Virus record (IMG/VR): IMGVR_UViG_3300027708_000012
Coordinates: 1 to 64,000 of that record
Length of the DNA: 64,000 nt
Strand: one strand, 5' to 3'
Positions 1-13,888 of the stretch are shown here, one piece after another. Position 1 is the stretch's first letter. The number at the start of each line of letters is the position of its first letter. The notes under the pieces are model-generated. The model ran no database searches and was not told the origin of the DNA. It saw only the letters and a program-made list of their open reading frames with translations. Made by a program: the position numbers and the translations under genes.

Positions 1-7
1 AGCACAA

Positions 8-172
8 ATGAAAACATTTTATTACAAGCAGACTGTAGAGCTTACGCTAGAGGTACAAGCGGAAACAGCTGAAGAGGCAGATGCTATTGCTAACGCAACT
101 GACATAACTGATGCGGGCGTTATAGCAACGGAATACGGCTGGGAAGAAGACGGCTACGCAGATGTTGACTAA
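8..172 (+). CDS. small acidic hypothetical protein (54 aa, MKTFYYKQ...YADVD)
   Basis: Manually translated ATG 8 to TAA 172; below the ORF-track cutoff; upstream context cut by the window edge. Confidence 0.6.
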   Translation: MKTFYYKQTVELTLEVQAETAEEADAIANATDITDAGVIATEYGWEEDGYADVD

Positions 173-184
173 AGTGTAGGGTTA

Positions 185-213
185 TTGACATTTTGGCTAG
201 CTTATTGTATAAT
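185..213 (+). promoter_or_regulatory. sigma70-type early promoter
   Basis: TTGACA(185-190)-N17-TATAAT(208-213), then SD AAGGAG. Confidence 0.9.
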
Positions 214-232
214 ACAATTTTAAGGAGCTAGT

Positions 233-463
233 ATGTGTACATGCATGCAATTGTCAAGTGCCACTCGTAATAAATTTACAGTACTGTACTGCTATCACCC
301 GCACCGACCGCCCGGTAACACGGAAGTTAGCATGCAGGAGTATGCTAGCATGACACTTGTAGCACACACCCCTATGGAAGCTATTGTCAACGCACAAAAA
401 TTGTGTTTTGTCAAGCACCCGGGCCTACAATGTGTAGTGTACAATGCTTTCGTAACGGAATAA
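233..463 (+). CDS. hypothetical early protein
   Basis: Own promoter and SD (TAAGGAGC) directly upstream. Confidence 0.6.
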   Translation: MCTCMQLSSATRNKFTVLYCYHPHRPPGNTEVSMQEYASMTLVAHTPMEAIVNAQKLCFVKHPGLQCVVYNAFVTE

Positions 464-496
464 CCCTACAGCCCGTAAGGGCTTATTACAGCGCAT

Positions 497-525
497 TTGA
501 CAGAGAGCTCAAAATGCGTTATAAT
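497..525 (+). promoter_or_regulatory. sigma70-type early promoter
   Basis: TTGACA(497-502)-N17-TATAAT(520-525). Confidence 0.9.
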
Positions 526-544
526 AAGTTTTTAAGGAGCTAGA

Positions 545-808
545 ATGTTAGAAGTTACACAGTTTGCAAACAACAGTTTTCATGCACAAAATTCGGATGT
601 ACGCAATTGCGAAGCTATTGTATTTGCCGAAAGCGTCCGTTCGGGTCGCACTATGTTGCAAGTTATTAATTATGTGCTAGAAGAAGACGATTCGGACACT
701 AACTTGTTGTGCGCTTGCGAAACACTGCAAGAAACTATTGTTAACGCATATAAAAAGCAAATTATCTCAGAATACTTAGACAATCTGTTGTACGAGAACA
801 ACAAATAA
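545..808 (+). CDS. hypothetical early protein
   Basis: Promoter plus SD TAAGGAGC; 87 aa. Confidence 0.75.
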   Translation: MLEVTQFANNSFHAQNSDVRNCEAIVFAESVRSGRTMLQVINYVLEEDDSDTNLLCACETLQETIVNAYKKQIISEYLDNLLYENNK

Positions 809-827
809 CCCTACAAGGTGTAGGGAC

Positions 828-856
828 TTGACGTCCCTACATTTTGGCGCTATAAT
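828..856 (+). promoter_or_regulatory. sigma70-type early promoter
   Basis: TTGACG(828-833)-N17-TATAAT(851-856). Confidence 0.85.
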
Positions 857-888
857 ACTAACATCAACACACAAAAGGAGCGACACTT

Positions 889-1089
889 ATGTATGATATC
901 GTAAAGAACCCAATCCCAAAGACCGGTCTGTTCGCAACACCAGAGTCATTTGAACAGTTGATGGAATACTGCCAACGGTTCAGTGGACAAGAGCGTATCA
1001 TCGCTATCACAGTGGCCACAATGGCCCTGAACTTGGCACACAATGTAGTTGAGAAAGAAATCCTGTCTAAAGAAATCTTTGCACAATAA
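889..1089 (+). CDS. hypothetical early protein
   Basis: SD AAGGAGCGA at 875-883; 66 aa. Confidence 0.8.
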   Translation: MYDIVKNPIPKTGLFATPESFEQLMEYCQRFSGQERIIAITVATMALNLAHNVVEKEILSKEIFAQ

Positions 1090-1098
1090 GGAGCACTT

Positions 1099-1356
1099 AT
1101 GCAAGTTAAAGAATTGATTGAGATGTTGCAGGGCCTGGACCCTGAGGCTCAAGTGCATTATGCCTACAACTATGGCGACCACTGGCGCACAGAGGTTGCC
1201 CCAAAGGTTGATAGGGTTGATGTGGGTGCAGTGGTCTACAGTGAGTACCATCGCATGGACAAGATGGTTGAGAACGAATACGACACAGAATTCGACGAGG
1301 AAACGGGTGAAGAGATTGTTGATGAAACCCTGCGTCGAGTAGTGGTATTGAGTTGA
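1099..1356 (+). CDS. hypothetical early protein
   Basis: SD AAGGAGC; acidic C-terminus; 85 aa. Confidence 0.8.
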   Translation: MQVKELIEMLQGLDPEAQVHYAYNYGDHWRTEVAPKVDRVDVGAVVYSEYHRMDKMVENEYDTEFDEETGEEIVDETLRRVVVLS

Positions 1357-1381
1357 CAGGTGCGCCGAAAGGCGCTATAAT
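1353..1381 (+). promoter_or_regulatory. sigma70-type early promoter with GC hairpin in spacer
   Basis: TTGACA(1353-1358, contains the upstream TGA stop)-N17-TATAAT(1376-1381); GCGCC-GAAA-GGCGC in the spacer. Confidence 0.9.
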
Positions 1382-1411
1382 TAAGACTTAAACAACACAT
1401 AGGAGCGAAAC

Positions 1412-1753
1412 ATGGGTTATTTTACAGATTGCGATTTCGACAGCACACACGAGATGCTGGACTGTATCAATGAAGTGATCGAGCGCAACATCCGCAACAA
1501 CTTCGTACAGCATCCCGCCTCGGACTTGGGACTGGACATCCGCTGTGGACGATTGCTAGTGGATGCGGCAGATGAGATCATTGCTGTGCCCAATCACAAC
1601 TTGCGTGGGCTTGACTACTACGGCGGGTTCGAGTACATTGAAGAAGGCGACGGGCGCCAAACAGTGGGCGACTACACTTTCTTTACCTGTGTGAACGAGC
1701 GGGTGCAAGACTGCTTTGATGCGTTGCGCTCTAGTGTAGCGGTTGACGAGTAA
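1412..1753 (+). CDS. hypothetical early protein
   Basis: SD AGGAGCGA; 113 aa. Confidence 0.8.
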   Translation: MGYFTDCDFDSTHEMLDCINEVIERNIRNNFVQHPASDLGLDIRCGRLLVDAADEIIAVPNHNLRGLDYYGGFEYIEEGDGRQTVGDYTFFTCVNERVQDCFDALRSSVAVDE

Positions 1754-1771
1754 GCGTTTTGGCTGTATAAT
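1743..1771 (+). promoter_or_regulatory. sigma70-type early promoter
   Basis: TTGACG(1743-1748)-N17-TATAAT(1766-1771); downstream TAAGACTTAAAC identical to the 1353 promoter. Confidence 0.85.
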
Positions 1772-1800
1772 TAAGACTTAAACACACACAGGAGCACACA

Positions 1801-2292
1801 ATGGGTACACGTTCAATGATTGCTATTCAAAACCCTTACAACAAAACAGTTCGCGCAGTCTACTGCCACTGGGACGGTTACTTGGAGCACAACGGCGCTA
1901 TCTTGCAGAAGCATTACGCAGAAAGCTCTAAAGTCAATCATTTGGTTGCTATGGGCGACTTGAGTAGCTTGGGCACACAGATTGGCGAAGCACATCCCTT
2001 CAGCCCGCACGGTAGCAAAGAAGACGAGGCTTTGTACGAACACGCTAAGGATCAGGGCTATTGCACTTTTTACAAGCGCGACAGAAGCGAGTCAGACGTT
2101 GACTTTAAAGTGTTCAACACTCTGAAGCAAGCTGAAGATCACTACACTTGGAGCGACTATTACTATGTCTTCAAGTACTCAAAAGCAGACGACTATCAGT
2201 CAGGCGAGTGGTTCTACAAAAAGGCGGGCGAGCGTTGGAAGAAGCTGGCTCCCGCTATTAAGAAACTTAACGCAGAGGAGTGCGCAGGATGA
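1801..2292 (+). CDS. conserved phage hypothetical protein (YCHWDGY motif family)
   Basis: MGTRS...VYCHWDGY N-terminus, a pattern I recognise from phage hypotheticals; SD AGGAGC. Confidence 0.85.
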   Translation: MGTRSMIAIQNPYNKTVRAVYCHWDGYLEHNGAILQKHYAESSKVNHLVAMGDLSSLGTQIGEAHPFSPHGSKEDEALYEHAKDQGYCTFYKRDRSESDVDFKVFNTLKQAEDHYTWSDYYYVFKYSKADDYQSGEWFYKKAGERWKKLAPAIKKLNAEECAG

Positions 2293-2579
2293 CCGGATTT
2301 CAAAGCAAACGGGCTATGGCCCTTGCCCGCCTTGAGGCTCTAAGGGAAAGCCCTAGCCTCAGCGTCAGGGACGAAATAGAGATCAGTCGCTTGGAAGAGG
2401 CTGTGGATCAACTGCCCGATCTGGTAGATCTAGTCATGGAGCAGATCCGCATAGACATTGAGAATGGTGATCTTACAGCAATAGAAGAACTGTTGGGTCA
2501 TGTGCCCGAAGACATCCTCAAAGGCTTTCTCTCAGAAGACACAGTAATGGATATCAACAACACCGGAGGTAAATGGTAA
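2289..2579 (+). CDS. hypothetical protein
   Basis: ATG at 2289 overlaps the upstream stop (ATGA) with SD GAGGAG; the track start at 2280 looks less likely. Confidence 0.75.
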   Translation: MTGFQSKRAMALARLEALRESPSLSVRDEIEISRLEEAVDQLPDLVDLVMEQIRIDIENGDLTAIEELLGHVPEDILKGFLSEDTVMDINNTGGKW

Positions 2580-2725
2580 TGAGTAAAGAACTTCAATCAA
2601 TTGTTAATGGATATAACGATCTTATTATCCGATGCGCAGAGTTGACTGACAAGACTCTCTTGGCAGAGGTATTAGCCTCTGTGGATGAAACTCAAGTTCA
2701 AATTTCAAAAGGACTACTACGATGA
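2579..2725 (+). CDS. small hypothetical protein (48 aa, MSKELQSIVNG...)
   Basis: Manual translation; TAATG and ATGA overlaps couple it to both neighbours. Confidence 0.65.
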   Translation: MSKELQSIVNGYNDLIIRCAELTDKTLLAEVLASVDETQVQISKGLLR

Positions 2726-2898
2726 GCAAGATGGCAGAACTTGATTGGGAAATTGAATACCGTGCCTGTGATGAGGGTATGAGTGCAGAGGACATTGCCA
2801 AAGACTTGAACTGTCCCATTGAGATTGTCAATGCTTGGTTCAAAGGTGCAGGTATTTGGGACGAGGAGCTCAGCCCTTACGCTACCAGCAACAGCTGA
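2722..2898 (+). CDS. small putative helix-turn-helix protein (58 aa)
   Basis: Manual translation MSKMAELDWEIEYRACDEGMSAEDIAKDLNCPIEIVNAW...; GMSAEDIAKDLNC matches an HTH pattern. Confidence 0.6.
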   Translation: MSKMAELDWEIEYRACDEGMSAEDIAKDLNCPIEIVNAWFKGAGIWDEELSPYATSNS

Positions 2899-2916
2899 TG
2901 TTGTAAAAATACAACA
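2899..2916. promoter_or_regulatory. operator-like palindrome TGTTG-N8-CAACA
   Basis: TGTTGTAAAAATACAACA, 9 nt upstream of the -35 at 2926. Confidence 0.6.
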
Positions 2917-2925
2917 CCTTTTGAG

Positions 2926-2954
2926 TTGACAATTTGGGCTCTCTGCGCTATAAT
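2926..2954 (+). promoter_or_regulatory. sigma70-type early promoter
   Basis: TTGACA(2926-2931)-N17-TATAAT(2949-2954). Confidence 0.9.
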
Positions 2955-2977
2955 AATGACATAGTAAGGAGAGCGCA

Positions 2978-3121
2978 ATGAAGATTGTAATAAAAATCAA
3001 ACCCAAGCATAGAGAGCATTATGTTCTCTTTGCCCAAAATACGCCCTTCAAGCAGAAGGTTGTAGAGAGCAAGATTAAATACAAACGTCAACCCAAACAC
3101 AAAGGAAAGCACAATGATTGA
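2978..3121 (+). CDS. small basic protein, ArfA (alternative ribosome-rescue factor)-like
   Basis: Manual translation MKIVIKIKPKHREHYVLFAQNTPFKQKVVESKIKYKRQPKHKGKHND; resembles the ArfA core (P-F-x-Q-x-V...Y-x-R-x-x-K-H); SD AAGGAG. Confidence 0.55.
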   Translation: MKIVIKIKPKHREHYVLFAQNTPFKQKVVESKIKYKRQPKHKGKHND

Positions 3122-3332
3122 GATCCTGGGATTCAACCCAAAGCAAATGGCCTTAGCAGACATCATGTGGGGCATCAATAGCAAGGAAGGTGTGGATGCC
3201 TTTATTCGAACCCTGCCCGCTGTAGAGCAACGCGAGTGCAAGACCATCATCCAAATGATGCTGTTGGCGTTCGCTGACGAGTGCAACGATACCCATGAAG
3301 CTGACATGGTTATTGACAAGTTCAGACTTTGA
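3114..3332 (+). CDS. hypothetical protein
   Basis: SD AAGGA; coupled to the upstream ORF. Confidence 0.75.
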   Translation: MIEILGFNPKQMALADIMWGINSKEGVDAFIRTLPAVEQRECKTIIQMMLLAFADECNDTHEADMVIDKFRL

Positions 3333-3341
3333 CAGTATAAT
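3313..3341 (+). promoter_or_regulatory. sigma70-type early promoter
   Basis: TTGACA(3313-3318)-N17-TATAAT(3336-3341), embedded in the 3' end of the upstream CDS. Confidence 0.85.
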
Positions 3342-3371
3342 ACATACATACAGACACACAAAGGAGTAAAG

Positions 3372-3638
3372 ATGAACATTAGCACACTAGAAGCCTATGT
3401 GGCACAGAAGAACCAGTGGACCCGCATTTTCAAAGGCAAGGAACTGAGCTTGTTGAACGCTAAGGATCGCCAGCGTATCGCTGACATGATTGATGCAGAC
3501 ATGAGCCCTGAGAACCTTACCTGCGATGGCGAATTGCCACGCGATGTAGTGCGTGACAAGGTGCGCCGTTTGAGCCGTTGTGCTGAGGAACTCCTCAGCA
3601 TTGATCCTTCAGTAACCTTTTACGAAATGGGAGTTTAA
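3372..3638 (+). CDS. hypothetical early protein
   Basis: SD AAGGAG; 88 aa. Confidence 0.8.
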   Translation: MNISTLEAYVAQKNQWTRIFKGKELSLLNAKDRQRIADMIDADMSPENLTCDGELPRDVVRDKVRRLSRCAEELLSIDPSVTFYEMGV

Positions 3639-3639
3639 C

Positions 3640-4287
3640 ATGCCTAATTGGTGCAACAACTATCTTGTCTTAGAACACGAAGACCCAGCAATGATCGAGC
3701 GGGCCAAGAAGGCCTTTGCTGATGGCAAACTGTTGAATGAGTTTTGCCCAGTGCCCGATGACTTGCACATTGTGGCAGGTCGTGTGGGTGATGACGAAGA
3801 TCAAAAGCAAAAGGATCTTGTAGCACAGGAAGAAGTCAATGTGGCCAAGCATGGCTACGCCAATTGGTATGACTACTGTGTGAATGAATGGGGCACCAAG
3901 TGGGATGTGGGCGGTGAGGGTGATCAAGCCAGCCAGGACAGTCCTACAGACTTACGCATGAACTTTGATAGTGCATGGGCTCCGCCTATTGCGGCTATGG
4001 AGAAGTTCCAGGACTTGGGCTTTAAGGTCAAGCTCATCTATTGGGAATCGGGTATGTGCTATTGTGGTCTGTTCGACGAGAATGGCGACGACTACATGGA
4101 CTATACAGATATGACAGCGGCACAAGTGGCTGAGTATATCAACCCTGAAGTTGACGAGTGCATGTGCATCGTTGAGAACTTGGAAGAGTGGGAAGAACAG
4201 AACTCGGAAGACGAGGAAAACATCGACATCGATCTTGATGGCGGTTTGAGTGCGGTAAACGAACAGGAACAACATGAAAACAAATAA
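3640..4287 (+). CDS. DUF1281/YubB ferredoxin-like domain family protein
   Basis: MPNWCNN start, WYDYC...WGTKWD and F-D-S-A-W-x-P-P motifs typical of this family. Confidence 0.7.
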   Translation: MPNWCNNYLVLEHEDPAMIERAKKAFADGKLLNEFCPVPDDLHIVAGRVGDDEDQKQKDLVAQEEVNVAKHGYANWYDYCVNEWGTKWDVGGEGDQASQDSPTDLRMNFDSAWAPPIAAMEKFQDLGFKVKLIYWESGMCYCGLFDENGDDYMDYTDMTAAQVAEYINPEVDECMCIVENLEEWEEQNSEDEENIDIDLDGGLSAVNEQEQHENK

Positions 4288-4405
4288 AGAAAAGAACCTA
4301 GAGCATGATGCTCGCGAGCAATCGCGTGTTCGTCCTGCACCAAAAGACTATGATTTCAAAGCTCTTGAGGCTGTCATCCGATCCTGGATAACAGAAAGCA
4401 AATGA
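4274..4405 (+). CDS. small hypothetical protein (43 aa)
   Basis: Manual translation MKTNKEKNLEHDAREQ...; SD CAGGA; ATGA overlap with the next gene. Confidence 0.55.
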   Translation: MKTNKEKNLEHDAREQSRVRPAPKDYDFKALEAVIRSWITESK

Positions 4406-4653
4406 GCCGATTAGCATTGTTTGGCAGGCCTTATGTAGTCTTTAATGCGAACAACAAGGAACACAGACGTTGGTTTGCAGACTTCAATAGAAAGCTGACA
4501 TGGGCAGACTGTCCAGTCCGTTTTGTAGTGGATGATGATCACGGCGATTTGGTTACAATGATCCAGCGTAACCTGATTCAATACTATGTGGACAAAGAGT
4601 TTGGCAAGTTAGAAAATCCAAAGATTCGTCCAAAACCAAAGAAAAATGGTTGA
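4402..4653 (+). CDS. hypothetical protein
   Basis: 83 aa; coupled start. Confidence 0.75.
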   Translation: MSRLALFGRPYVVFNANNKEHRRWFADFNRKLTWADCPVRFVVDDDHGDLVTMIQRNLIQYYVDKEFGKLENPKIRPKPKKNG

Positions 4654-4678
4654 CAACTAACCAAAATAGTTGTATAAT
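4650..4678 (+). promoter_or_regulatory. sigma70-type early promoter
   Basis: TTGACA(4650-4655, contains TGA stop)-N17-TATAAT(4673-4678); ACAACTA/TAGTTGT inverted repeat across the spacer. Confidence 0.9.
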
Positions 4679-4734
4679 TAGAACATGAACAAGGCGTTCA
4701 TACTTTTAAAACACACACAGAAGGAAACTTTAAA

Positions 4735-5085
4735 ATGGCTACAGATAAAACTTTTTCGGTTGCAGGTATTTCTAAATTGAACGGTTCTTACAAGATTCGT
4801 TTTGCCAATGACATCATGCGTATCAAGGTGCTCGCTAAGAGTGGCCATGAAGACATCCGCTTGGCTGATCTCGAGGGTGAGTTCTCCAAGATGGAAGCGG
4901 CTAAGATGCTCTTGACGCTTGAAGACTTTGCTGATGCTACAGCCCAGGCAACCATCACAGAGTACATTGAAGACAACACTCCTAAGACAGCCGCTCCTAA
5001 GGCTAAGACAGCTCCTGTGAAGGCAGTTGCTCCTAAGGCTCCTAAGGCTGTTAAGGTTGTTGAGAACGAGGATGCTCCTTTCTAA
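4735..5085 (+). CDS. hypothetical protein with Lys/Ala/Pro-rich C-terminal tail
   Basis: Globular N-terminus (F.VAGISK...RFAND..RIKVLAK.GH) plus PKTAAPKAKTAPVKAVAPKAPKA tail. Confidence 0.85.
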   Translation: MATDKTFSVAGISKLNGSYKIRFANDIMRIKVLAKSGHEDIRLADLEGEFSKMEAAKMLLTLEDFADATAQATITEYIEDNTPKTAAPKAKTAPVKAVAPKAPKAVKVVENEDAPF

Positions 5086-5099
5086 ACAATGGTATCAAA

Positions 5100-5282
5100 A
5101 TGAGCTTTATCCAGTTTGAAGTCTGGGGCCTATACGAGGGGCATGAAGAGCTCCTCGAGTGCGTCCCAACCCTTAAAGAAGCAGAGAAGGTTGCACAAGA
5201 CCTTCTTGAGTTTAACGAAGAGATTTGGATCCTAGAGGATACAGACGATGATCTGAGAGAAGTGCGAAGGTATACGAATTAG
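5100..5282 (+). CDS. small acidic hypothetical protein
   Basis: 60 aa; the last base of its stop codon is the first base of the tRNA. Confidence 0.65.
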   Translation: MSFIQFEVWGLYEGHEELLECVPTLKEAEKVAQDLLEFNEEIWILEDTDDDLREVRRYTN

Positions 5283-5358
5283 GGCCTATAGCTCAGTTGG
5301 TTAGAGCAGAGGACTCATAATCCTTTGGTCCCTGGTTCGAGTCCAGGTGGGCCCACCA
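5282..5358 (+). tRNA. tRNA-Ile2 (anticodon CAT, lysidine-type, reads AUA)
   Basis: Cloverleaf: acceptor GGGCCTA/TGGGCCC, D-arm GCTCAGTTGGTTAGAGC, anticodon arm GAGGA-CTCATAA-TCCTT, T-arm CCTGG-TTCGAGT-CCAGG, A73 plus encoded CCA; paired G1-C72 argues against fMet; overall similar to bacterial tRNA-Ile2. Confidence 0.9.
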
Positions 5359-5363
5359 CATAT

Positions 5364-5393
5364 GAAAGGTGTTGTAGAAATACAACACCTTTC
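5364..5393. promoter_or_regulatory. 13-bp perfect hairpin containing a second TGTTG-N8-CAACA palindrome
   Basis: GAAAGGTGTTGTA-GAAA-TACAACACCTTTC; core at 5370-5387 lies 9 nt upstream of the -35 at 5397. Confidence 0.65.
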
Positions 5394-5396
5394 GTC

Positions 5397-5425
5397 TTGA
5401 CTGACTCTAGGATCTCAGCTATAAT
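5397..5425 (+). promoter_or_regulatory. sigma70-type early promoter
   Basis: TTGACT(5397-5402)-N17-TATAAT(5420-5425). Confidence 0.8.
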
Positions 5426-5497
5426 CAAACTTCGAAGGCAACGGGATGGACGGCAAGGCTGGGCAACCCAATAAAGACCTTTCAGAAAGAAAGGTTG

Positions 5498-5526
5498 TTG
5501 ACAGTTTGGCAAATCCTTGCTATAAT
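5498..5526 (+). promoter_or_regulatory. sigma70-type early promoter (extended -10)
   Basis: TTGACA(5498-5503)-N17-TATAAT(5521-5526) with TG-n. Confidence 0.9.
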
Positions 5527-5556
5527 AGAGACATACAGACACACAAGGAGCATAAG

Positions 5557-5931
5557 ATGGAAGATTTCAAAAGCTGGGAAGAGATGTCCGTGCTAGAGCA
5601 ATATGCCTGCCAATACTGGGATATGTACAAGGATGCCTACGGCGTTCGCCCACGTGGTATTGATACCACCAACTGGACTGAAGCAGACTTTGAAGCTGAG
5701 TTCGTTCAGTTGGCTCGTGTTATCGATCAAGAGAACACTCTGCGTGAAGAGCGTGAAGCAATCGCCGCACACGAGTTCGAAATGCGTATGCAGGACTTGA
5801 TGCGTTCGGGTGCTAAGACTCGTGAGATGGCCATGCGCTGGGTTCACGAGGCAGAAGGTAGTGATGGCGACGACGAGTACCTTTGCTTCTTGTTGGGCTT
5901 GCCCTATCGTTATTTTAAGGAGATGGTATAA
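5557..5931 (+). CDS. hypothetical early protein
   Basis: Start reassigned to ATG 5557 (SD AAGGAGC, downstream of promoter 5498); the track ORF begins at 5446. Confidence 0.8.
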   Translation: MEDFKSWEEMSVLEQYACQYWDMYKDAYGVRPRGIDTTNWTEADFEAEFVQLARVIDQENTLREEREAIAAHEFEMRMQDLMRSGAKTREMAMRWVHEAEGSDGDDEYLCFLLGLPYRYFKEMV

Positions 5932-6182
5932 TGTTATTAGAAGATCAATTTTGCCGTATAGAGTACAAGGGTCAAGTCTACGATAGCCGCCATGGTGGAC
6001 CCTTTGATCGTGGCTCAGCAGACAGCTGGTATAGCCGTCCTTTCAACCCTCACTACTACGAGGGTGGCTCCTACGATTCAGAGCCCATTCAAGCCCAGGA
6101 CATGACTCCTGCAGAGATCGTGGCCTATGCCGCTGGATACGAGTACAATGAACAACATGGTGGCAAGAAAGATTGGGATTAA
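5931..6182 (+). CDS. conserved phage hypothetical protein (HGGPFDRGSADSWY motif)
   Basis: SD AAGGAG; TAATG coupling. Confidence 0.8.
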   Translation: MLLEDQFCRIEYKGQVYDSRHGGPFDRGSADSWYSRPFNPHYYEGGSYDSEPIQAQDMTPAEIVAYAAGYEYNEQHGGKKDWD

Positions 6183-6185
6183 CGG

Positions 6186-6214
6186 TTGACGCCCAGCCTA
6201 AAAGGCGTTATAAT
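6186..6214 (+). promoter_or_regulatory. sigma70-type early promoter
   Basis: TTGACG(6186-6191)-N17-TATAAT(6209-6214). Confidence 0.85.
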
Positions 6215-6245
6215 ACTTACATCAACAACGAACTTGGAGCGAAAC

Positions 6246-6947
6246 ATGTTCAAACTGCTTTCTACAGCGAATCCCAAAATCCAAAAGGGCACGAAGCTTG
6301 GCTATCTATCATTCATCCTACACCTTGCACCATCCACCCTTAGCGGGCGCAACACCTGCCCAAAGGCCACACCTGGTTGCATCGCATCATGTCTTAACAC
6401 CGCAGGCCGTGGCGGTATGTTCAAGCGCGGTGAGAACACCAACACTATTCAGCGAGCCCGCATCCGCAAGACGAATTATTTCTACGAACAGCGTCAGGAC
6501 TTCATGCTTGATTTGAAGAAGGACATTGAGAAGGGCATTAAGATGGCTACCAAGCTGGGCCTGACTCCTGTGTTTCGTCTTAACGGCACGAGCGATTTGA
6601 GCTGGGAGAAATACGATATGCTCCCTGGCTTGAATGTATTCGAGTGCTTCCCTACAGTACAGTTCTATGACTATACAAAGATCCTGGGTCGTAAGGTCAA
6701 AGGCATTGCCAACTACCACTTGACCTTCTCTAAGGCAGAGAACAACGACAGCGATGTGGCAGAAGCACTCTTGCAAGGCATGTCAGTGGTTGCTGTCTAC
6801 GACAAGATCCCAGAGGGTGTTCCATCCGCTGACGAGACAGACTTGCGCTTCTTAGACCCTAAGGGCACAATGCTTGGATTGAAGGCTAAGGGTCGTGCAA
6901 AAAAAGACTATTCAGGCTTCGTAATTCGGTTGACTGAAGTGGCTTAA
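6246..6947 (+). CDS. Cys-cluster protein, GP88-like phage family
   Basis: Start reassigned to ATG 6246 (SD GGAGCGA); LHLAP...CPKATPGCIASCLNTAGRG, FRLNGTSD, FYDYTK, DETDLRFLD motifs. Confidence 0.7.
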   Translation: MFKLLSTANPKIQKGTKLGYLSFILHLAPSTLSGRNTCPKATPGCIASCLNTAGRGGMFKRGENTNTIQRARIRKTNYFYEQRQDFMLDLKKDIEKGIKMATKLGLTPVFRLNGTSDLSWEKYDMLPGLNVFECFPTVQFYDYTKILGRKVKGIANYHLTFSKAENNDSDVAEALLQGMSVVAVYDKIPEGVPSADETDLRFLDPKGTMLGLKAKGRAKKDYSGFVIRLTEVA

Positions 6948-6958
6948 GACGTTATAAT
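6930..6958 (+). promoter_or_regulatory. sigma70-type early promoter
   Basis: TTGACT(6930-6935)-N17-TATAAT(6953-6958), inside the upstream CDS end. Confidence 0.85.
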
Positions 6959-6991
6959 TACAACATCAACAGCAAATAAGGAGCGAAACTT

Positions 6992-7177
6992 ATGTCAGAT
7001 AAACTATATGCATTCTGCGACGCAGTCGTAGCATTCGTAGGATTTTTCCTAGTGTACGGAGTGTCAGGTACAATTGACACAGCCCCAGACAGCCAACTCT
7101 TGCCATTGTGCGGTATTGCACTCTGCGGATTGGCCCTGTTCTTTGCAGGCGTTAACGGCTTGACAACCCGCCGCTAA
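6992..7177 (+). CDS. small membrane protein (2 predicted TM segments)
   Basis: Two hydrophobic stretches; SD AAGGAGCGA. Confidence 0.75.
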   Translation: MSDKLYAFCDAVVAFVGFFLVYGVSGTIDTAPDSQLLPLCGIALCGLALFFAGVNGLTTRR

Positions 7178-7188
7178 GACAGTATAAT
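7160..7188 (+). promoter_or_regulatory. sigma70-type early promoter
   Basis: TTGACA(7160-7165)-N17-TATAAT(7183-7188). Confidence 0.9.
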
Positions 7189-7220
7189 TACTACTTCAAC
7201 AACACAATAGGAGCGACACT

Positions 7221-7541
7221 ATGGTAACAGCAAATCAGATTCAAGCAGGTTTTGTGCTAGCCCACTTGGCAGGCGTTGAGATGTATCAAAAGATTGGCGA
7301 GCGTGATGCATGCGGTTTTGGTTGGGTGGATGTGTACGTGGACCGTACCAACAGCAAGCAGGCCAAAGAGCTGATTGCAGCTGGCTTCCGCAAGGACTAC
7401 AAACCCAAGTGCTTGAGCTATTGGGATCCAGCAAAGATTCCAACTCAGTCAGTATCAGTCAAAGAAGCTGGCGCAGAGGCTCTGGCCACTTACTTGCAAA
7501 GCCTGGGCTTGAAGGCTTATGCAGGCTCGAGATTAGACTAA
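7221..7541 (+). CDS. conserved phage hypothetical protein (CGFGWV motif)
   Basis: SD AGGAGCGA; 106 aa. Confidence 0.8.
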   Translation: MVTANQIQAGFVLAHLAGVEMYQKIGERDACGFGWVDVYVDRTNSKQAKELIAAGFRKDYKPKCLSYWDPAKIPTQSVSVKEAGAEALATYLQSLGLKAYAGSRLD

Positions 7542-7550
7542 CCAAAAGAC

Positions 7551-7579
7551 ATGACAGGATGGCAACATCCTGTTATAAT
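7551..7579 (+). promoter_or_regulatory. sigma70-type promoter with spacer palindrome
   Basis: ATGACA(7551-7556)-N17-TATAAT(7574-7579) with TG-n; ACAGGATG-GCAA-CATCCTGT spans the spacer. Confidence 0.8.
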
Positions 7580-7609
7580 GTAAATATTAATTAACCAAAG
7601 GAGCGACGA

Positions 7610-8491
7610 ATGGCGAAAGTAGTTACATCAAAGATGCTGATGGCCCTGCAATCTGAAGTCACAACCAAGAGCTTGGAAGTGGAGTCAGTCAAGAAAGATT
7701 TGAGTAAAGAGACAGACGCTGAGATCATGGATCGTATGCGTGATCGTTTTGAGATCCTCGATGACATGACCCGTGCGGTTAAGAGCGGCAAAGTCCGTGC
7801 TATGATTGTCACAGGCCCTCCAGGTGTTGGCAAGAGCTTTGGTGTAGAGAAAGTACTGTCAAAGCATGATGTCTTCGCTGACGTGGCTAACGATCAGAAG
7901 CTGAAGAAGTATGAAGTGGTCAAGGGCGCAATGAGCGCATTGGGCTTGTACAGTAAGCTCTACCACTACAAGGATGCTAAGAACATTCTAGTGTTTGATG
8001 ACTGTGACTCAGTACTGTTAGATGACTTGAGCTTGAACATTCTCAAAGCGGCACTGGACACATCCAGTAAGCGTATGATCCATTGGAACACTGACTCACA
8101 TCTATTGCGTCGTGAAGGCGTGCCAGATAGCTTTGAGTTCAAAGGTGGTGCTATCTTCATTACCAACATCAAGTTTGATCACGTTAAGAGCAAGAAGCTG
8201 CGTGACCACTTGGAAGCCCTGGAGAGCCGTTGCCACTACTTGGATCTCACTATTGATACTGAGCGCGAGAAGCTCTTGCGTATTGAGCAAGTGGTAGCTG
8301 AGTGCGGCATGTTGGACAAGTATGAGTTTGAAGACTACCAGAAGATGGAAGTGGTAGACTTTGTTAAGGCCAATGTGCCACGCCTACGTGAGCTGAGCCT
8401 GCGTACAGTCCTTAAGGTAGCAGACTTGAAGCACGGCTTCCCGGACAAGTGGAAGGCAGTAGCAGAGGTAACGTGTATGCGCAACAGGTAA
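7610..8491 (+). CDS. AAA+ ATPase
   Basis: Walker A GPPGVGKS, Walker B ILVFDD, sensor FITN, Arg finger SRC. Confidence 0.9.
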   Translation: MAKVVTSKMLMALQSEVTTKSLEVESVKKDLSKETDAEIMDRMRDRFEILDDMTRAVKSGKVRAMIVTGPPGVGKSFGVEKVLSKHDVFADVANDQKLKKYEVVKGAMSALGLYSKLYHYKDAKNILVFDDCDSVLLDDLSLNILKAALDTSSKRMIHWNTDSHLLRREGVPDSFEFKGGAIFITNIKFDHVKSKKLRDHLEALESRCHYLDLTIDTEREKLLRIEQVVAECGMLDKYEFEDYQKMEVVDFVKANVPRLRELSLRTVLKVADLKHGFPDKWKAVAEVTCMRNR

Positions 8492-8661
8492 GCTGTGCGC
8501 CACAGTACAGTAAGCAGCAGCATAGCTGTAGGCTGTACAGGACATGCCCAACGATTCGCTCCCGGCAAGTGTGTCCATGAAAAGGTCTTGTAAGCCCGAA
8601 TCGCTCCCGGCAAGACCTTTTGTATCCCCAGACTGATTAAATTCTTTCTGGGGATTTTTTT
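8492..8661 (+). ncRNA. candidate structured sRNA with two anti-Shine-Dalgarno loops (UCGCUCC)
   Basis: Hairpins 8492-8506, 8505-8538, 8540-8576 and 8580-8621; 18-nt direct repeat CGAWTCGCTCCCGGCAAG (8552-8569, 8597-8614) held in unrelated outer stems; terminator follows. Confidence 0.55.
8624..8661 (+). terminator. intrinsic terminator closing the early region
   Basis: ATCCCCAGA(8624-8632)...TCTGGGGAT(8647-8655) followed by a T-run. Confidence 0.8.
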
Positions 8662-8737
8662 CTTTTTGATATCGGTGGGGGACATATAAAATAATCATCG
8701 AGAGGGTGGGGGCACCCAGGCATGAATTTTATAAAAC

Positions 8738-8755
8738 TGTTGCTATAGCGCAACA
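8738..8755. promoter_or_regulatory. third TGTTG-N8-CAACA palindrome
   Basis: TGTTG-CTATAGCG-CAACA; no consensus promoter at the 9-nt spacing here. Confidence 0.4.
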
Positions 8756-8868
8756 GCGCATGGGTACCGAAGTATTTTCACCCCTCTTTTTCTACAAGTA
8801 CTTCTTTATATTTTTTTTCGAGCAAGAAATTCTTGAGACGCAGGACCCTTTCGGGTAAATAATAGTAT

Positions 8869-9573
8869 ATGAAAACCTGTACCAAATGTTGCCAATCCAA
8901 GCCCTTTGATGCGTTCTACGTTAAAGGCACCAATCCCCGCACTGGGCATACTCAATACCTTAGCCAATGCAGAGCGTGTACACTTGCTGCTTATGTGCCA
9001 AAAACACCCAAACCCAAACCTCCACCCCGTACTGAAAAAACTTGCCGTGTGTGTGCTGCCACTAAAAATCTGTCTGAATTCTACAATCACACGTTGACTT
9101 GTAGAGCATGTATCAGCGATAAGAATCGTGCCAATCGTGTGTGTAAACCCACACCTCCATTAAAGAACACACCAAGAGCCATGTACATGCGTGAACGTCG
9201 CCGTTCTAACCCTTTGGCCAAGTTGCGTGCCAATGTAGGTACACTTATAGCCAATGTATTAAGTAATCAAGGATATAAGAAAACTACAAAATCTGCCAGT
9301 ATACTAGGATGTTCTTTTGATGAGTTCTCTGCTCATATTGAAAGTCAGTTCTTGCACGGTATGTCATGGTCCAACCGTGCGCTTTGGCACATTGATCACA
9401 TAGTACCTGTTAAGCTAGCCCGTAACGAACCGGAACTGTTATTGCTCAATCACTACTCTAATCTTCGTCCATTATGGAAAGAACTCAATCAAACCAAAGC
9501 TAGCACACTAACACAAGACAGCTTGAATCATCCGCTATATAAACAAATCTTGGAAAACAGAATCTCAGGTTGA
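8869..9573 (+). CDS. HNH endonuclease with N-terminal CxxC zinc-finger repeats
   Basis: Four CxxC pairs; WHIDHIVP...NHYSNLRPLW...N..K motif. Confidence 0.85.
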   Translation: MKTCTKCCQSKPFDAFYVKGTNPRTGHTQYLSQCRACTLAAYVPKTPKPKPPPRTEKTCRVCAATKNLSEFYNHTLTCRACISDKNRANRVCKPTPPLKNTPRAMYMRERRRSNPLAKLRANVGTLIANVLSNQGYKKTTKSASILGCSFDEFSAHIESQFLHGMSWSNRALWHIDHIVPVKLARNEPELLLLNHYSNLRPLWKELNQTKASTLTQDSLNHPLYKQILENRISG

Positions 9574-9707
9574 ATTTTTTTGCGCAGGTATTTTTTTTAC
9601 CCTGCAGAACCCATTCTCAACAGTGACAGCATTAACTGGCAGTTTAATCAGGGTGGGAAAATTTTTCCGCTGGGCTTCGCCGAAAAATCTGCTTTCCGCT
9701 TCGCGAA

Positions 9708-9914
9708 TCACATCTGCTTGAACCTAGCACCCGAGTTGGCCCAGGAACCACTTGCGGGACCGGCACCTATGCTGTAGCCAATGTTGTCCTTGAGTTTGCG
9801 ATTGTGCTTGCGAGTGCGGGGTTTTTCCAATAATCGTTGATCTTGGCTTCGTTCAGAGCCAGCACCCATGTGTGCGTTGCCCACGTAGTTTTCAGTAATT
9901 TCTTTAATTCGCAT
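9708..9914 (-). CDS. small putative internal head protein
   Basis: MRIKEITE N-terminus; CTAAATA late box 5 nt upstream. Confidence 0.6.
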   Translation of the reverse strand: MRIKEITENYVGNAHMGAGSERSQDQRLLEKPRTRKHNRKLKDNIGYSIGAGPASGSWANSGARFKQM

Positions 9915-9955
9915 TGTTTATTTAGTGACGATAAATAAATCATAGAGGATCAATA

Positions 9956-10936
9956 ATGACTAACTTGGCACAACAAATACGCGAACTAAGCGATCGACTG
10001 GTAGCAATCAACGAACGTGGGGAAGACTTGGATGTTCAACACAATGAACCGCCATTAAAGATAGGTGATGTAGATCCACGCAACGGACAGAAGATTCTCA
10101 GTGCTGCTACTGATGGTTCGGGCAATGTGATTCGCAGTCGCTTTGGTGATATTTACAATGTCAAATACGGTCCAGCAGATGCTCCAGCACCCACGCCAAC
10201 TCCGAGCCCAGCACCAGAGCCAACGCCCGCACCTGGTCCTAGTCCAGAACCTACGCCTGCTCCGGTTCCCGATGTTATTGCTCCTATGCCCACTCCTGAC
10301 CCAGCGCCCGTGAACCCTACTGAGCCATGCGGTCCTGAACTCAAAGCCAAACTTAGACTCATGCCTTCTTTTAACAAGGCCTATGCTGCGGCCAAACAGG
10401 GCGGATGTAGTGATTTTGAATGGTGCCAGATCATTGATGTTCCAAATATTGCACCCATGCCATCCAAGCCAGCTGACAAGAAAGTAGACTGGCTCGGACA
10501 AGCTGATCCCTTAGGTGGTACTATGGCTAATCCAATGGGTTTTGGTGCCAACAGTAACTTTGGCGCAGAAAGTCTTGACGATCGAGCTGCTCTACTGGAA
10601 AATGAAGAATTGAATCGTTGGAGAAAGATTGCTGGACTAAAAGAAGCTGAAAGTAAAACAGGAAGTCCTGCGCCCGCAGCTGGCGGTGATTTGCCAGAAA
10701 TCAAAGCGGCCAGTAAGAGTGCTGCTATTGCTCAAGCTCGTAAGAAAGGCATCAAACGCTTTCGCTGGTGTAGCATGTACAAGGTCACAGATGCCAAGAA
10801 GAAACCGCCAAACATTGCACCAATGCCATCCAAGCCAGCTGACAAGAAAGTAGACTGGCTCGGACAGCAAACACCCTTAGGTGGTACAATGGATAATCCA
10901 ATGAGCTTTGCGCCTAACAGTAACTTTGGTGCTTGA
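9956..10936 (+). CDS. putative internal head protein with duplicated module
   Basis: ATAAATA box and SD GAGGA; Pro-rich linker; 42-aa internal repeat. Confidence 0.8.
   Translation: MTNLAQQIRELSDRLVAINERGEDLDVQHNEPPLKIGDVDPRNGQKILSAATDGSGNVIRSRFGDIYNVKYGPADAPAPTPTPSPAPEPTPAPGPSPEPTPAPVPDVIAPMPTPDPAPVNPTEPCGPELKAKLRLMPSFNKAYAAAKQGGCSDFEWCQIIDVPNIAPMPSKPADKKVDWLGQADPLGGTMANPMGFGANSNFGAESLDDRAALLENEELNRWRKIAGLKEAESKTGSPAPAAGGDLPEIKAASKSAAIAQARKKGIKRFRWCSMYKVTDAKKKPPNIAPMPSKPADKKVDWLGQQTPLGGTMDNPMSFAPNSNFGA
10442..10933 (+). repeat. 126-bp intragenic direct repeat (10442-10567 and 10808-10933)
   Basis: PNIAPMPSKPADKKVDWLGQ..PLGGTM.NPM.F..NSNFGA occurs twice. Confidence 0.95.
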
Positions 10937-11380
10937 TTATTCTTTAAAGTAGTATTCGTAGTTAACAGTGTCTTTGTTAGTCTTACGAATCTTAGCGCCA
11001 TTTTTCAAATGAAAACGTTCGGCCATTTGAGTTTGAGGACTTAGGGTAACTATACCTGTTAGTGTTTCAAACTCTGATTTTAGCCAGTTTGCCGCTTGTT
11101 GTAGTAAACTTGCTCCGGCTCCTGGACTATAACTCCAAATAGTATAGAACACAGCCACATTGTGGTCTTTGCTCATACTAACTAGATCTTCTTCAGATTC
11201 AGGAACATCGGCTAACCATTGCATACAAGTGGCCGCTAGCACTTCATCACCTCGGCGTAGTATTAGTATTTCACTGTTGTTGGAAATACGTTGTTCAAGA
11301 GGAATGTGAGGACGAACTGGATCGTCCTTCATCAAGTGAGTTAACGGGTCGTTAATATCTCGTATGCGGTAAAGTTCCAT
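10937..11380 (-). CDS. GNAT-fold protein resembling the malonyl-CoA decarboxylase catalytic domain
   Basis: AVFYTIWSYSPGAGASLL...LKSEFETLTGIVTLSP; A..FHLKNG resembles GNAT motif B. Confidence 0.5.
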   Translation of the reverse strand: MELYRIRDINDPLTHLMKDDPVRPHIPLEQRISNNSEILILRRGDEVLAATCMQWLADVPESEEDLVSMSKDHNVAVFYTIWSYSPGAGASLLQQAANWLKSEFETLTGIVTLSPQTQMAERFHLKNGAKIRKTNKDTVNYEYYFKE

Positions 11381-11444
11381 GATTTCCTGGTAGTTATTAT
11401 ATGTGTACTTATCTCATTGTTAAAAAAATAGCATTACACGAAGA

Positions 11445-12923
11445 TTACAAGTCGTCACTTGGCAAGTTATTCAACAGTTCTCTAAGTTTGCTTGACTCTA
11501 CATTGGCCTTAACCTTGGGCTTGGCTAGGTCAAATCCTTCTTTAGGGCTTGCACGTTCCCAACCGGTATCTTCTGTAGTTACAGTCTGTCGTTGTTTAAT
11601 ACTGTTTAGTAAAGTAGATCCTGCACTTTGACTGTTATGATTTCCATAACCATCTTCCTCACTTAGATCACTAATGCGTAGTGTGTCCACATTAAAATCC
11701 AAATCAATCTTCATACCAACACCGCTCGAGCTACGTGTTTTCATTAACTGGATTTGATAACGTCCACGCTCACGCATTGCACGACTTGTAAAGATACCAA
11801 ACACATTATCTGCTGTCTGAATCTTACTAAGTCCACCCGAGATATGACTGTGATCAAACTCAACTTCTTCAACAGCACCTCGATTCAACTGTGCCGCTGT
11901 AACAAACACACAGTTCTTTTCCACCGCCAAATTACGCAGTTCTTCACTCACATACTTGTCTTTGACAAACAAGTTTTCAGCACTAATACGCTTGCTCAAA
12001 GGTAGTAGCAAGTCCATGTAGTCAACTAACAGTACGTCAATCTTACGTCCCATTTTGATTTCATACTCTTTCATATAAGCACGAATATCGTTTGCTGTCT
12101 TACCACTTGGCATATACTTGACTTGGAACTGGCCAGACTTCTTGCCAATCATTTTAACTTTCATTTCAACATCATCGATGCTCTTGAAAATCTCTCTTGT
12201 AGGTATTCCAGTTACCATTGCATCCACACGCAAGCTAACTAATTCTTCACTCAACTCTAGTGTGAGATACAATACATTGTGACCAGCAAGGGCATAGTTA
12301 ACACCAAGGTTAGCCAAAAACAAGCTCTTACCAGCACCAGAGCCGCCAGCCCAGATATTAAGCTCACCGCGATTAAATCCTCCATACAACTTATCATCAA
12401 TGCTTTTCCAGCCTGTAGATATTTGTCCATTTTTATCCTTGATCTTCATAAGACGTGCTCTAGGATCAGCAAAGTAATCTGTGCCCATGTCACGTTGTAG
12501 TCCTACTTGTACTGCTTGTTTAATCTTTTCTTCCACCGGACCATACTCGCCTTTTTCCAACAAGTCCGCCGATTCTAAGATTGCTCGCTCAAGTCCTTTG
12601 TGACGAGTAAACGTTTCAAAGTCGTTGAGTAGCCATTCAAAATGTTCTTCACGCAAATCTGTGGCGGCTTTTAAATTTGATCCTGTGGCCGCATTAATAA
12701 TATCTGGCGTGGGCAATACATTATTTTCGCTTACATATTTGGTTAAAAACTCCGCGGAATCCTGTAGTCTGCGATCAAATAGTTTACTATCAAAAATACT
12801 TTGACAGCGTACAAATGTACCAGCATCTGCCAACATCATCTCTAAATAGACACGCTGAATATCGTAGCCATAGTCTACGTTTTGTCTTGCTTTATCTTTC
12901 TTGTTATCGTTATAATCACTCAT
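11445..12923 (-). CDS. gp41: replicative DNA helicase (DnaB/T4 gp41 family)
   Basis: Walker A GGSGAGKS, TLELSE, VDYMDL, TAAQLNR, QLMKTR motifs. Confidence 0.95.
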   Translation of the reverse strand: MSDYNDNKKDKARQNVDYGYDIQRVYLEMMLADAGTFVRCQSIFDSKLFDRRLQDSAEFLTKYVSENNVLPTPDIINAATGSNLKAATDLREEHFEWLLNDFETFTRHKGLERAILESADLLEKGEYGPVEEKIKQAVQVGLQRDMGTDYFADPRARLMKIKDKNGQISTGWKSIDDKLYGGFNRGELNIWAGGSGAGKSLFLANLGVNYALAGHNVLYLTLELSEELVSLRVDAMVTGIPTREIFKSIDDVEMKVKMIGKKSGQFQVKYMPSGKTANDIRAYMKEYEIKMGRKIDVLLVDYMDLLLPLSKRISAENLFVKDKYVSEELRNLAVEKNCVFVTAAQLNRGAVEEVEFDHSHISGGLSKIQTADNVFGIFTSRAMRERGRYQIQLMKTRSSSGVGMKIDLDFNVDTLRISDLSEEDGYGNHNSQSAGSTLLNSIKQRQTVTTEDTGWERASPKEGFDLAKPKVKANVESSKLRELLNNLPSDDL

Positions 12924-12928
12924 ACGCT

Positions 12929-12957
12929 ATTATACTCTCTTTATACATTAATTGCAA
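12929..12957 (-). promoter_or_regulatory. sigma70-type promoter for helicase
   Basis: TTGCAA-N17-TATAAT on the - strand. Confidence 0.6.
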
Positions 12958-13888
12958 TGTGTTTGACAAGATCCCACTTATAATCCCATACTCTCTGTTT
13001 GGTATGATATAATACCGCTCCAATGCTACTACTAGGATCTCCTGGGTTAGGTAAACTCCATCGATATTTAAATTTAGATTCAACTACGTTTTTGTTGGCT
13101 TGACTATTCATAGCACAACCTCCCATGTAGACTAGACAGTCGGCGTTGGTTAGTTGTTTAGCTTTGAGCATGATACCAGATACTTGCTCCTCAAACACTA
13201 GTTGTACTGCGGCCGCCAGGTCACATTGTTCCTGTAAGGTAGTTAATTCATTAAGGTTCCAATTAAGGACTCCCTGATGAAAATTAGTATTACAGCGCAA
13301 TTCACCTGCATCAAAGTAACTTCTAACATACTGTAAAAATTTGTAAGGATCGCCTTGCTCTGCCATTTTTTGTAATAAGTATTCATCCTTGATAGGAGTC
13401 AAGCCAACAAATTGTGTAAAGGCACTATAAAATAATCCTAGACTATGTGGATAACTTCTGCTCCACACTTTCTTCATTTCACCGTGTAGCCCTTGCCATA
13501 TGGTAGCACATTCAAATTCTCCGATCGCATCGAGCACAACAATCGCACAATGATTAAACGGGCTTGTATAATAGCCAGCGGCAGCGTGACTACTATGATG
13601 AGGAGTATAAGAAACTTTTGCATATTTAAATTGTTTAAGATGACGTTTTGGTAGTGTAGACATATCAAACGCTGTACGATATTGTCCAGCATACAATTGT
13701 CTTGCTTTTTTAATCCACGGACGTTCGTACCAAAAAATACGATCCGGACTTCCATAGTTTAATGCTGGCACAGTTTGCGAACTATCTAGTTCGTCGTACT
13801 TGCTAATAGTCTGTGATACTAGTTTACCCTCTTTGAATACAGCAAGACTTGAGCCGTGATTAAGAGCATTTATCCCCCAGTGTATCAT
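12941..13888 (-). CDS. carbamoyltransferase, N-terminal (Kae1-like) domain only
   Basis: HHSSHAAAGYY, VLDAIGE, SLGLFYS, GGCAMNSQAN, PGDPSSSIGA; 315 aa with no C-terminal YrdC-like domain. Confidence 0.85.
   Translation of the reverse strand: MIHWGINALNHGSSLAVFKEGKLVSQTISKYDELDSSQTVPALNYGSPDRIFWYERPWIKKARQLYAGQYRTAFDMSTLPKRHLKQFKYAKVSYTPHHSSHAAAGYYTSPFNHCAIVVLDAIGEFECATIWQGLHGEMKKVWSRSYPHSLGLFYSAFTQFVGLTPIKDEYLLQKMAEQGDPYKFLQYVRSYFDAGELRCNTNFHQGVLNWNLNELTTLQEQCDLAAAVQLVFEEQVSGIMLKAKQLTNADCLVYMGGCAMNSQANKNVVESKFKYRWSLPNPGDPSSSIGAVLYHTKQRVWDYKWDLVKHIAINV

Follow-up and report, generated by a model that had tools for sequence, protein, structure and literature searches.

Hairpin loops complementary to an extended ribosome-binding sequence at the 3' end of the early messenger of a giant phage, and matched changes of loop and ribosome-binding sequence in a sister clade

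Phage-encoded RNAs that act on ribosome-binding sites (RBS) of their own transcription unit are exemplified by the c4 antisense RNA of phages P1 and P7 and the CI RNA of P4. These RNAs are made from the same transcription unit as their targets, carry short loop sequences complementary to sites that include an RBS, and reportedly differ between related phages by matched changes in RNA and target that set their specificity (Citron and Schuster 1990). The c4 RNA lies upstream of a single target operon (icd-ant), is cut out by RNase P and controls immunity of a temperate phage. In Firmicutes, host-encoded stand-alone RNAs such as Staphylococcus aureus RNAIII and RsaE, or Bacillus subtilis RoxS, present several redundant apical loops with a C-rich motif (UCCC) that matches the generic Shine-Dalgarno (SD) sequence and pairs with the SD region of many messages. 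In the icaR mRNA of S. aureus, a single unstructured UCCCCUG motif in the 3'UTR is reported to pair with the SD of the same message, followed by RNase III cleavage (Ruiz de los Mozos 2013). The 3'UTR-derived sRNAs of enterobacteria (CpxQ, SroC and DapZ class) lie at the end of a coding message, share its terminator and contain a seed more conserved than its surroundings; their release by RNase E and their Hfq dependence are established. In T4-type phages, the RegB endoribonuclease and the RegA translational repressor selectively inactivate early messages through a sequence feature (GGAG) of their ribosome-binding sites (review PMC3014915), and PeSL cassettes, made of a near-perfect sigma-70 promoter, a stem-loop between or over the promoter boxes, an SD and a start codon, are repeated next to small ORFans (PMC2839356, PMC4122927).

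Here we analysed a stretch of 64,000 nucleotides (hereafter the window), corresponding to the first 64 kb of the 345-kb IMG/VR contig IMGVR_UViG_3300027708_000012, which derives from an uncultured myovirus encoding a sheath-like protein and a T4-type terminase. An earlier note, made from the sequence alone, had described two stem-loops between the stop codon of an ATPase gene and a terminator, both exposing TCGCTCC, the exact complement of the GGAGCGA RBS at six early genes. All these sequence statements were confirmed, and the observation proved far stronger than could be seen from the window alone. The first hairpin (SL1, 8540-8576, + strand) presents AUUCGCUCC at 8554-8562 in its apical loop, and the second (SL2, 8580-8621, + strand) presents AAUCGCUCC at 8599-8607. 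A separate intrinsic terminator follows at 8624-8661 (+), with a 9-bp G+C-rich stem in a hairpin at 8624-8655 and a run of seven T up to 8661. The shared 18-mer CGAWTCGCTCCCGGCAAG occurs exactly twice in the window, against 0.04 expected. Folding with RNAfold placed both motifs in apical loops (MFE -63.8 kcal/mol, z = -4.26), and the energy required to open the loops was only 0.2 and 1.3 kcal/mol. A covariance model built from relatives found only these two sites in the window, with 50.2 bits (E = 5e-12) for SL1 and 14.6 bits for the SL2 core. A third hairpin (SL0, 8505-8538, +), an accessory two-tier structure absent from the earlier description, lies upstream in the same UTR. The related motif AAGCAGCC-N-AGAGCTGY recurs in 15 of 83 UTRs of the window clade and in 4 of 37 UTRs of the sister clade described below (among others in L005, L011, L263 and L266, where L numbers denote loci retrieved from IMG/VR), so that it is shared across both loop types; it could be a processing or protein-binding site.

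The hairpins are located at the end of a gene cluster whose target side fits the definition of PeSL cassettes. Positions 185-7579 (+) carry an array of about 15 near-consensus sigma-70 promoters, eight of them perfect (TTGACA-17-TATAAT, 12/12), each followed by a 24-27-nt A/C-rich leader, an RBS and an ATG. Most of them contain a small G+C stem-loop inside the promoter spacer or over the -35 box (for example 1359-1375 and 7554-7573). The word GGAGCGA occurs 11 times in the window against 2.5 expected; seven copies lie on the + strand within 877-7606, and the only minus-strand copies are the two loops. Six of the seven are located 9-12 nt before an ATG: at 877-883 (gene starting at 889), 1402-1409 (gene starting at 1412), 6236-6243 (a GP88-family gene, whose true start is ATG 6247 and not TTG 6186), 6980-6987 (gene starting at 6992), 7210-7216 (gene starting at 7221) and 7600-7606 (the ATPase gene), all on the + strand. 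The sites at 1402, 6236 and 6980 read GGAGCGAA, which gives 8 bp with loop 1. Several other early genes carry different ribosome-binding sites, namely GGAGCUAG (233, 545), GGAGCACA (1801) and GGAGUAAA (3372). The last gene of the cluster (7610-8491, +) encodes an AAA-type ATPase homologous to T4-like NrdC.10 (PHROG 1250). No sigma-70-like promoter was found between 7806 and 8666, and the terminator at 8624-8661 is the only strong + strand terminator between about 530 and 8700. It has to be noted, however, that PeSL stem-loops were shown to terminate transcription in RB49 (PMC2839356), so not all early transcripts need end in this module. The cluster is richer in G+C (45-48%) than the rest of the window (31-41%), with a sharp change between positions 1-12000 and 12000-64000, and the initiation signals change as well, from strong SD sequences in the early cluster to mostly none in genes beyond 8700.

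We then investigated whether the element is conserved. A search of IMG/VR with the ATPase gave 80 loci at 72-100% protein identity, and TCGCTCC was present after the stop codon in every one, usually twice, 35-88 nt apart; in the later, larger set it was present in 83 of 83 distinct loci of the clade. The loop AUUCGCUCC is fixed, whereas the stems are unrelated from locus to locus. Among 129 hairpins there are 112 different 5' arms, and the outer stem averages 9.1 bp, against 4.5 bp when partners were swapped between loci. Two module types recur. Type A, represented by SL1, has the form stem-CCAACG-loop-CGGYAA-stem, with a covarying 7-8-bp stem and a 9-nt apical loop. Type B, represented by SL2 with its 11-bp stem, UAAGC linker and CCG/CGG inner helix, has the form stem-UAARY-CCG-loop-CGG-Y-stem, and in most relatives it carries the T-run and is itself the terminator hairpin. 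In an ungapped alignment of 26 type-A modules, 97.4% of cells pair, against 21-38% when the partners were slid, and all seven outer pairs show compensatory double changes; the covariation score was 0.747 against 0.226 in shuffles, a value reached by 0 of 500. The inner 3-bp helix also covaries (CCG/CGG, GTG/CAC, CGG/CCG, GCG/CGC, TGG/CCA, CCA/TGG). The mean predicted probability that the 9-nt loop is unpaired was 0.80 over 132 sites. Internal G.U pairs number 30 against 11 A.C (p = 0.004) and a T-run follows, so the + strand is the functional RNA. In single-copy loci such as L185, L115, L146 and L198, the UAA of the conserved UAARY linker of type-B modules is the stop codon of the upstream gene and the 5' arm of the outer stem is coding; a terminating ribosome would therefore open the hairpin.

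Analysis of the RBS side revealed a corresponding bias. In 70 non-redundant loci of the clade, 569 ORFs have GGAG at -20 to -1, and 297 of these (52%) read GGAGCGA, 214 of them GGAGCGAA, against 1/64 (1.6%) expected. The words AGGAGCGA and TCGCTCCC are the two most widespread intergenic 8-mers of the clade, and all RBS copies lie on the same strand as the hairpins.

To determine whether loop and RBS change together, a test that the earlier note had proposed, more distant ATPases were used as queries, which gave 181 distinct loci in three clades. In the window clade (83 loci), the leading GGAG-core RBS 7-mer, GGAGCGA (307 ORFs), has as reverse complement the joint-commonest 3'UTR 7-mer, TCGCTCC (83 of 83). 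In a sister clade (37 loci, 60-72% identity to the window's ATPase), the ATPase UTR again holds one to five hairpins and a terminator, but here the top UTR word is TGCCCTC, present in 32 of 37 UTRs and exposed in hairpin loops with a probability unpaired of 0.83, whereas the commonest RBS words are AGAGGGC and GAGGGCA, the latter being its exact reverse complement. On the other hand, a third clade (49 loci) has an ordinary AAGGAGA RBS, no UTR after the ATPase and no such word. Among 117 loci with enough upstream sequence, loop and RBS types agreed in 111 (52 with both of type 1, 18 with both of type 2 and 41 with neither), and combinations of type 1 with type 2 were never observed. Of the six apparent exceptions, four are scoring artefacts and two, L080 and L242, are real partial exceptions. 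In these two the loops are of type 1, but most ribosome-binding sites have relaxed to GGAGCA, giving five contiguous pairs. They belong with L202 to a sub-lineage that keeps type-1 loops (in L242, CGUCGCUCC) while most of its sites read GGAGCA(A/G), which may be a relaxed or transitional state of the pair. Within the sister clade, a comparison of GAGGGC and AAGGGC sites with the loop variant found no fine-scale covariation, loci rich in AAGGGC sites keeping GCCCUC loops. A second gene context, the 3' end of a small wHTH gene followed by a single hairpin, showed the same coupling in 51 of 55 distinct loci. On the ATPase tree the traits change only 3-6 times, and the 2-3 independent contrasts, although all concordant, are too few for a sign test. 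The co-change therefore rests mainly on two clades plus one clade without either trait, and the weight of the argument is the exact reverse-complement identity in two clades that use different words.

The predicted energetics are compatible with pairing. Cognate RBS-loop duplexes gave -13 to -14 kcal/mol, whereas the same RBS regions with a generic 16S 3' tail gave -5.6 to -8.5. Non-cognate loop-RBS pairs gave -5.5 and -6.1, and an ordinary RBS prefers the 16S tail. The RBS regions are nearly unstructured, with opening costs of 1.8-3.2 kcal/mol. In addition, the loop begins with UUCG, which fits the YUNR U-turn typical of antisense recognition loops. An 8-bp helix inside a 9-nt loop is, however, sterically strained unless the 3-bp inner helix opens.

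Comparison with described RNAs did not identify a known family. A search of Rfam (release 15) over the whole window returned only tRNA at the gathering scores; at E<=10, region 8400-8900 gave only sub-threshold terminator-like hits (NsiR1, 21 bits against 39), and six relatives, including the sister clade, gave only tRNAs. The element resembles the C-rich-loop sRNAs in having two or more predicted unpaired apical loops, (A)UUCGCUCC, with a C-rich motif (CUCC here) complementary to SD sequences, but no homology to them was found with Rfam; its loops also match a private 3-4-nt extension of the SD, it is the 3'UTR of a phage message, and loop and extension co-vary between clades. It resembles c4 in the matched loop and RBS changes between related phages, but no homology was found, its position is the 3' end of an ATPase gene, next to or inside the terminator, in a lytic-type myovirus, and its complement is carried by dozens of genes as an extension of the SD. 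Compared with icaR, there are several structured loops and a whole set of putative target genes. As in the 3'UTR-derived enterobacterial sRNAs, it lies directly after a coding sequence, shares its terminator and contains a conserved, predicted single-stranded seed complementary to its putative targets. With RegB and RegA it would share the logic of selective inactivation of early messages, the agent being an RNA instead of a protein and the selective feature an extended SD. As for the PeSL cassettes, no element complementary to the cassette SD is mentioned in the passages retrieved from the two papers describing them, and the 3' loops are the new part. The phage has no close cultured relative: a search of 7600-9600 against INPHARED, in near and distant modes, gave no match; the best cultured relatives of the ATPase are PA5oct-type Pseudomonas jumbo phages at 45% identity, and PA5oct has no UTR after the gene. 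A literature search for the motif returned only primers and siRNAs, and a topical search found work on phage sRNAs but nothing like this element.

Altogether, we consider it more likely than not that the ATPase 3'UTR is a conserved structured RNA module of the sense strand, made of one to five hairpins (two in the window) and ending in the terminator of the early gene cluster, whose open apical loops hold 7-9-nt complements of a clade-specific extended SD element (GGAG plus CGAA here) carried by most genes of the same sigma-70-driven cluster. In this view, the loops would pair with those ribosome-binding sites, in trans as a stable 3' fragment or in cis on the same message, out-compete the 16S tail, block 30S binding and so reduce early-gene translation, possibly followed by decay of the message, as negative feedback or an early-to-late timer. 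Occlusion of the ribosome-binding site, and hence repression of early-gene translation, is the most economical and most likely consequence of such pairing. Host messages and late phage messages, which lack the extension, would be spared. The structure, the loop exposure, the transcribed strand, the loop invariance, the over-representation of the extended RBS and the co-change between clades are shown by the sequence analysis, whereas pairing in vivo, its repressive sign, its action in cis or in trans and the accumulation of a discrete processed small RNA are inferred from sequence alone. The interpretation of the earlier note, a 3'UTR-derived sRNA and a matching designed RBS forming a post-transcriptional shut-off of early genes that might also hit host mRNAs, is thus supported only in part: the structured RNA at the 3' end of the ATPase message, the match of its loops to the early RBS and their functional coupling have strong comparative support, whereas release of a discrete sRNA, repression or shut-off rather than protection, and effects on host messages are not shown. 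The word designed needs qualification too, since the uniform RBS is part of PeSL-type repeated cassettes (PMC2839356, PMC4122927), which can homogenise by recombination, and may partly reflect their concerted evolution.

The main alternative, although clearly less likely, is that loop and RBS pair as proposed but with a positive or protective outcome, the pairing shielding the GGAG of early sites from a RegB-like endonuclease or other RNases, storing messages in an inactive but stable form, or linking the 3' and 5' ends of the message to aid ribosome recycling. All the evidence for pairing fits this reading equally well, T4-type phages attack GGAG sites of early messages with RegB (PMC3014915), and the module is made by the early cluster itself. 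However, occlusion of an SD normally lowers initiation, no bacterial precedent is known for activation by SD occlusion, and PHROG and Pfam scans of about 30 early ORFs of the window found no RegB, RegA, Hfq, ProQ or CsrA-like protein and no other RNA-binding family, though most of these ORFs are ORFans. The same lack of a candidate RNA-binding protein weighs against the unlikely possibility that the hairpins are binding sites for a phage or host RNA-binding protein, an RNase or a 3'-end stabiliser, with incidental complementarity to the RBS. Invariant loops on variable stems are also typical of protein-binding hairpins, and the conserved linkers (UAARY; CCAA..YAA) are not explained by RBS pairing, but the loop would have to be the exact complement of the dominant RBS word by chance in two clades with different words and with no cross-type combinations among the 117 scorable loci.

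It is also improbable that the word is a double-stranded DNA site for a phage DNA-binding protein, such as an operator downstream of each early promoter and at the end of the cluster. The word occurs in both orientations, lies about +20 to +30 from the early promoters, a plausible operator position, and a small wHTH gene lies directly upstream of single-copy hairpins in relatives. Nevertheless, a DNA site needs no hairpin, and here the stems are maintained by compensatory changes with a G.U over A.C bias that only makes sense for RNA of one strand; orientation is strictly tied to context (RBS sense, loop antisense), and the spacing of the RBS word to the ATG is that of an SD. Still less likely, the loops could be inert remnants of inverted PeSL cassettes riding in terminator hairpins, since such cassettes recombine and shuffle in T4-type phages (PMC2839356). 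Similarity to the cassettes ends at the 8-nt word, however (flanks CCG..TCGG against ata..acat), and the invariance of the word in 83 of 83 loci while everything around it turns over indicates selection on the loop. A coding function is very unlikely: the window contains a 30-codon ORF at 8544-8636, and on the minus strand GGAGCGAA lies 9 nt before an ATG, as if preceding an antisense peptide, but the ATG/CAT at 8544-8546 is present in only 2 of 26 aligned relatives, stems change by paired substitutions that preserve no reading frame, and the spacing between modules varies from 35 to 88 nt. A CRISPR-repeat mimic (stems vary and the loop is fixed, the opposite pattern), a tRNA T-loop mimic (9-nt loop, no A58-type pattern) and a REP/MITE-like repeat (one conserved position, unrelated stems) were also considered and rejected.

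If the pairing is functional, this would be, as far as we know, the first phage case in which a whole temporal class of genes is marked by an extension of the SD, an RNA encoded at the end of that same class reads the mark, and the two have co-evolved into at least two orthogonal pairs. It would be an RNA counterpart of the T4 RegB/RegA early shut-off, would supply naturally orthogonal RBS and anti-RBS pairs of 7-9 nt, would give a functional handle on uncultured 300-kb phages whose early genes are all ORFans, and would add a regulatory partner to the PeSL cassettes, so far seen only as promoter-terminator shuffling units. A further reading, which we regard as tentative, is that these aquatic jumbo phages run a private translational code, in which a clade-specific barcode fused to the SD is read by a phage RNA with matching loops, and barcode and anti-barcode co-evolve into mutually orthogonal types (type 1, GGAGCGAA with UUCGCUCC; type 2, GAGGGCA with UGCCCUC). 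The phage could then switch off its own early genes without touching host or late messages and would also silence the early genes of a superinfecting relative of the same type, which amounts to RNA-based immunity groups acting on a whole set of genes in lytic-type giant phages.

A scan of IMG/VR for the 14-mer CGATTCGCTCCCGG returned at least 119 loci, about half of them chance hits in G+C-rich contigs, and also a set of unrelated contigs with the reverse-complement word used as a 5'UTR/RBS, which could not be linked to the system. In unrelated phage contigs (L082, L093, L116, L119, L120, L129, L154, L158, L161, L165 and L187), CCGGGAGCGAATCG(G), the exact reverse complement of the type-B loop module, lies 0-6 nt before the ATG of small secreted or membrane proteins and follows a TAAATA-like box, and in L161 and L187 it precedes a second GGAGCGAA RBS; this may be a coincidence or a target-side hairpin. 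A 5' hairpin of the class-3 type has the form CCG-GGAGCGAAU-CGG.

Within the early cluster of the window, a tRNA with anticodon CAU and an encoded CCA was found at 5282-5358 (+). Its G1-C72 pair and anticodon arm look like tRNA-Ile2 (lysidine type) rather than an initiator, and relatives (L046, L251, L263) carry one to three tRNAs at the same place. The boundary region after the terminator (8662-8860, +) holds G-rich boxes (GGTGGGGG, GGGTGGGGG), a TATAAAATAA box resembling a T4 late promoter, and the hairpin TTGCTATAGCGCAA followed by CAGCGCATGGGTACCGA, similar boxes occurring in about 30-40% of the clade. An Endo VII / HNH-like nuclease gene (PHROG 1035; 8869-9573, +), which may be a mobile endonuclease, lies directly after this boundary. 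Further downstream, the window contains a carbamoyltransferase-N-like gene (12941-13888) and two tandem genes on the minus strand (55701-57185 and 57182-58654) with full-length tryptophan halogenase domains (E about 1e-84 each), an unusual cargo for a phage.
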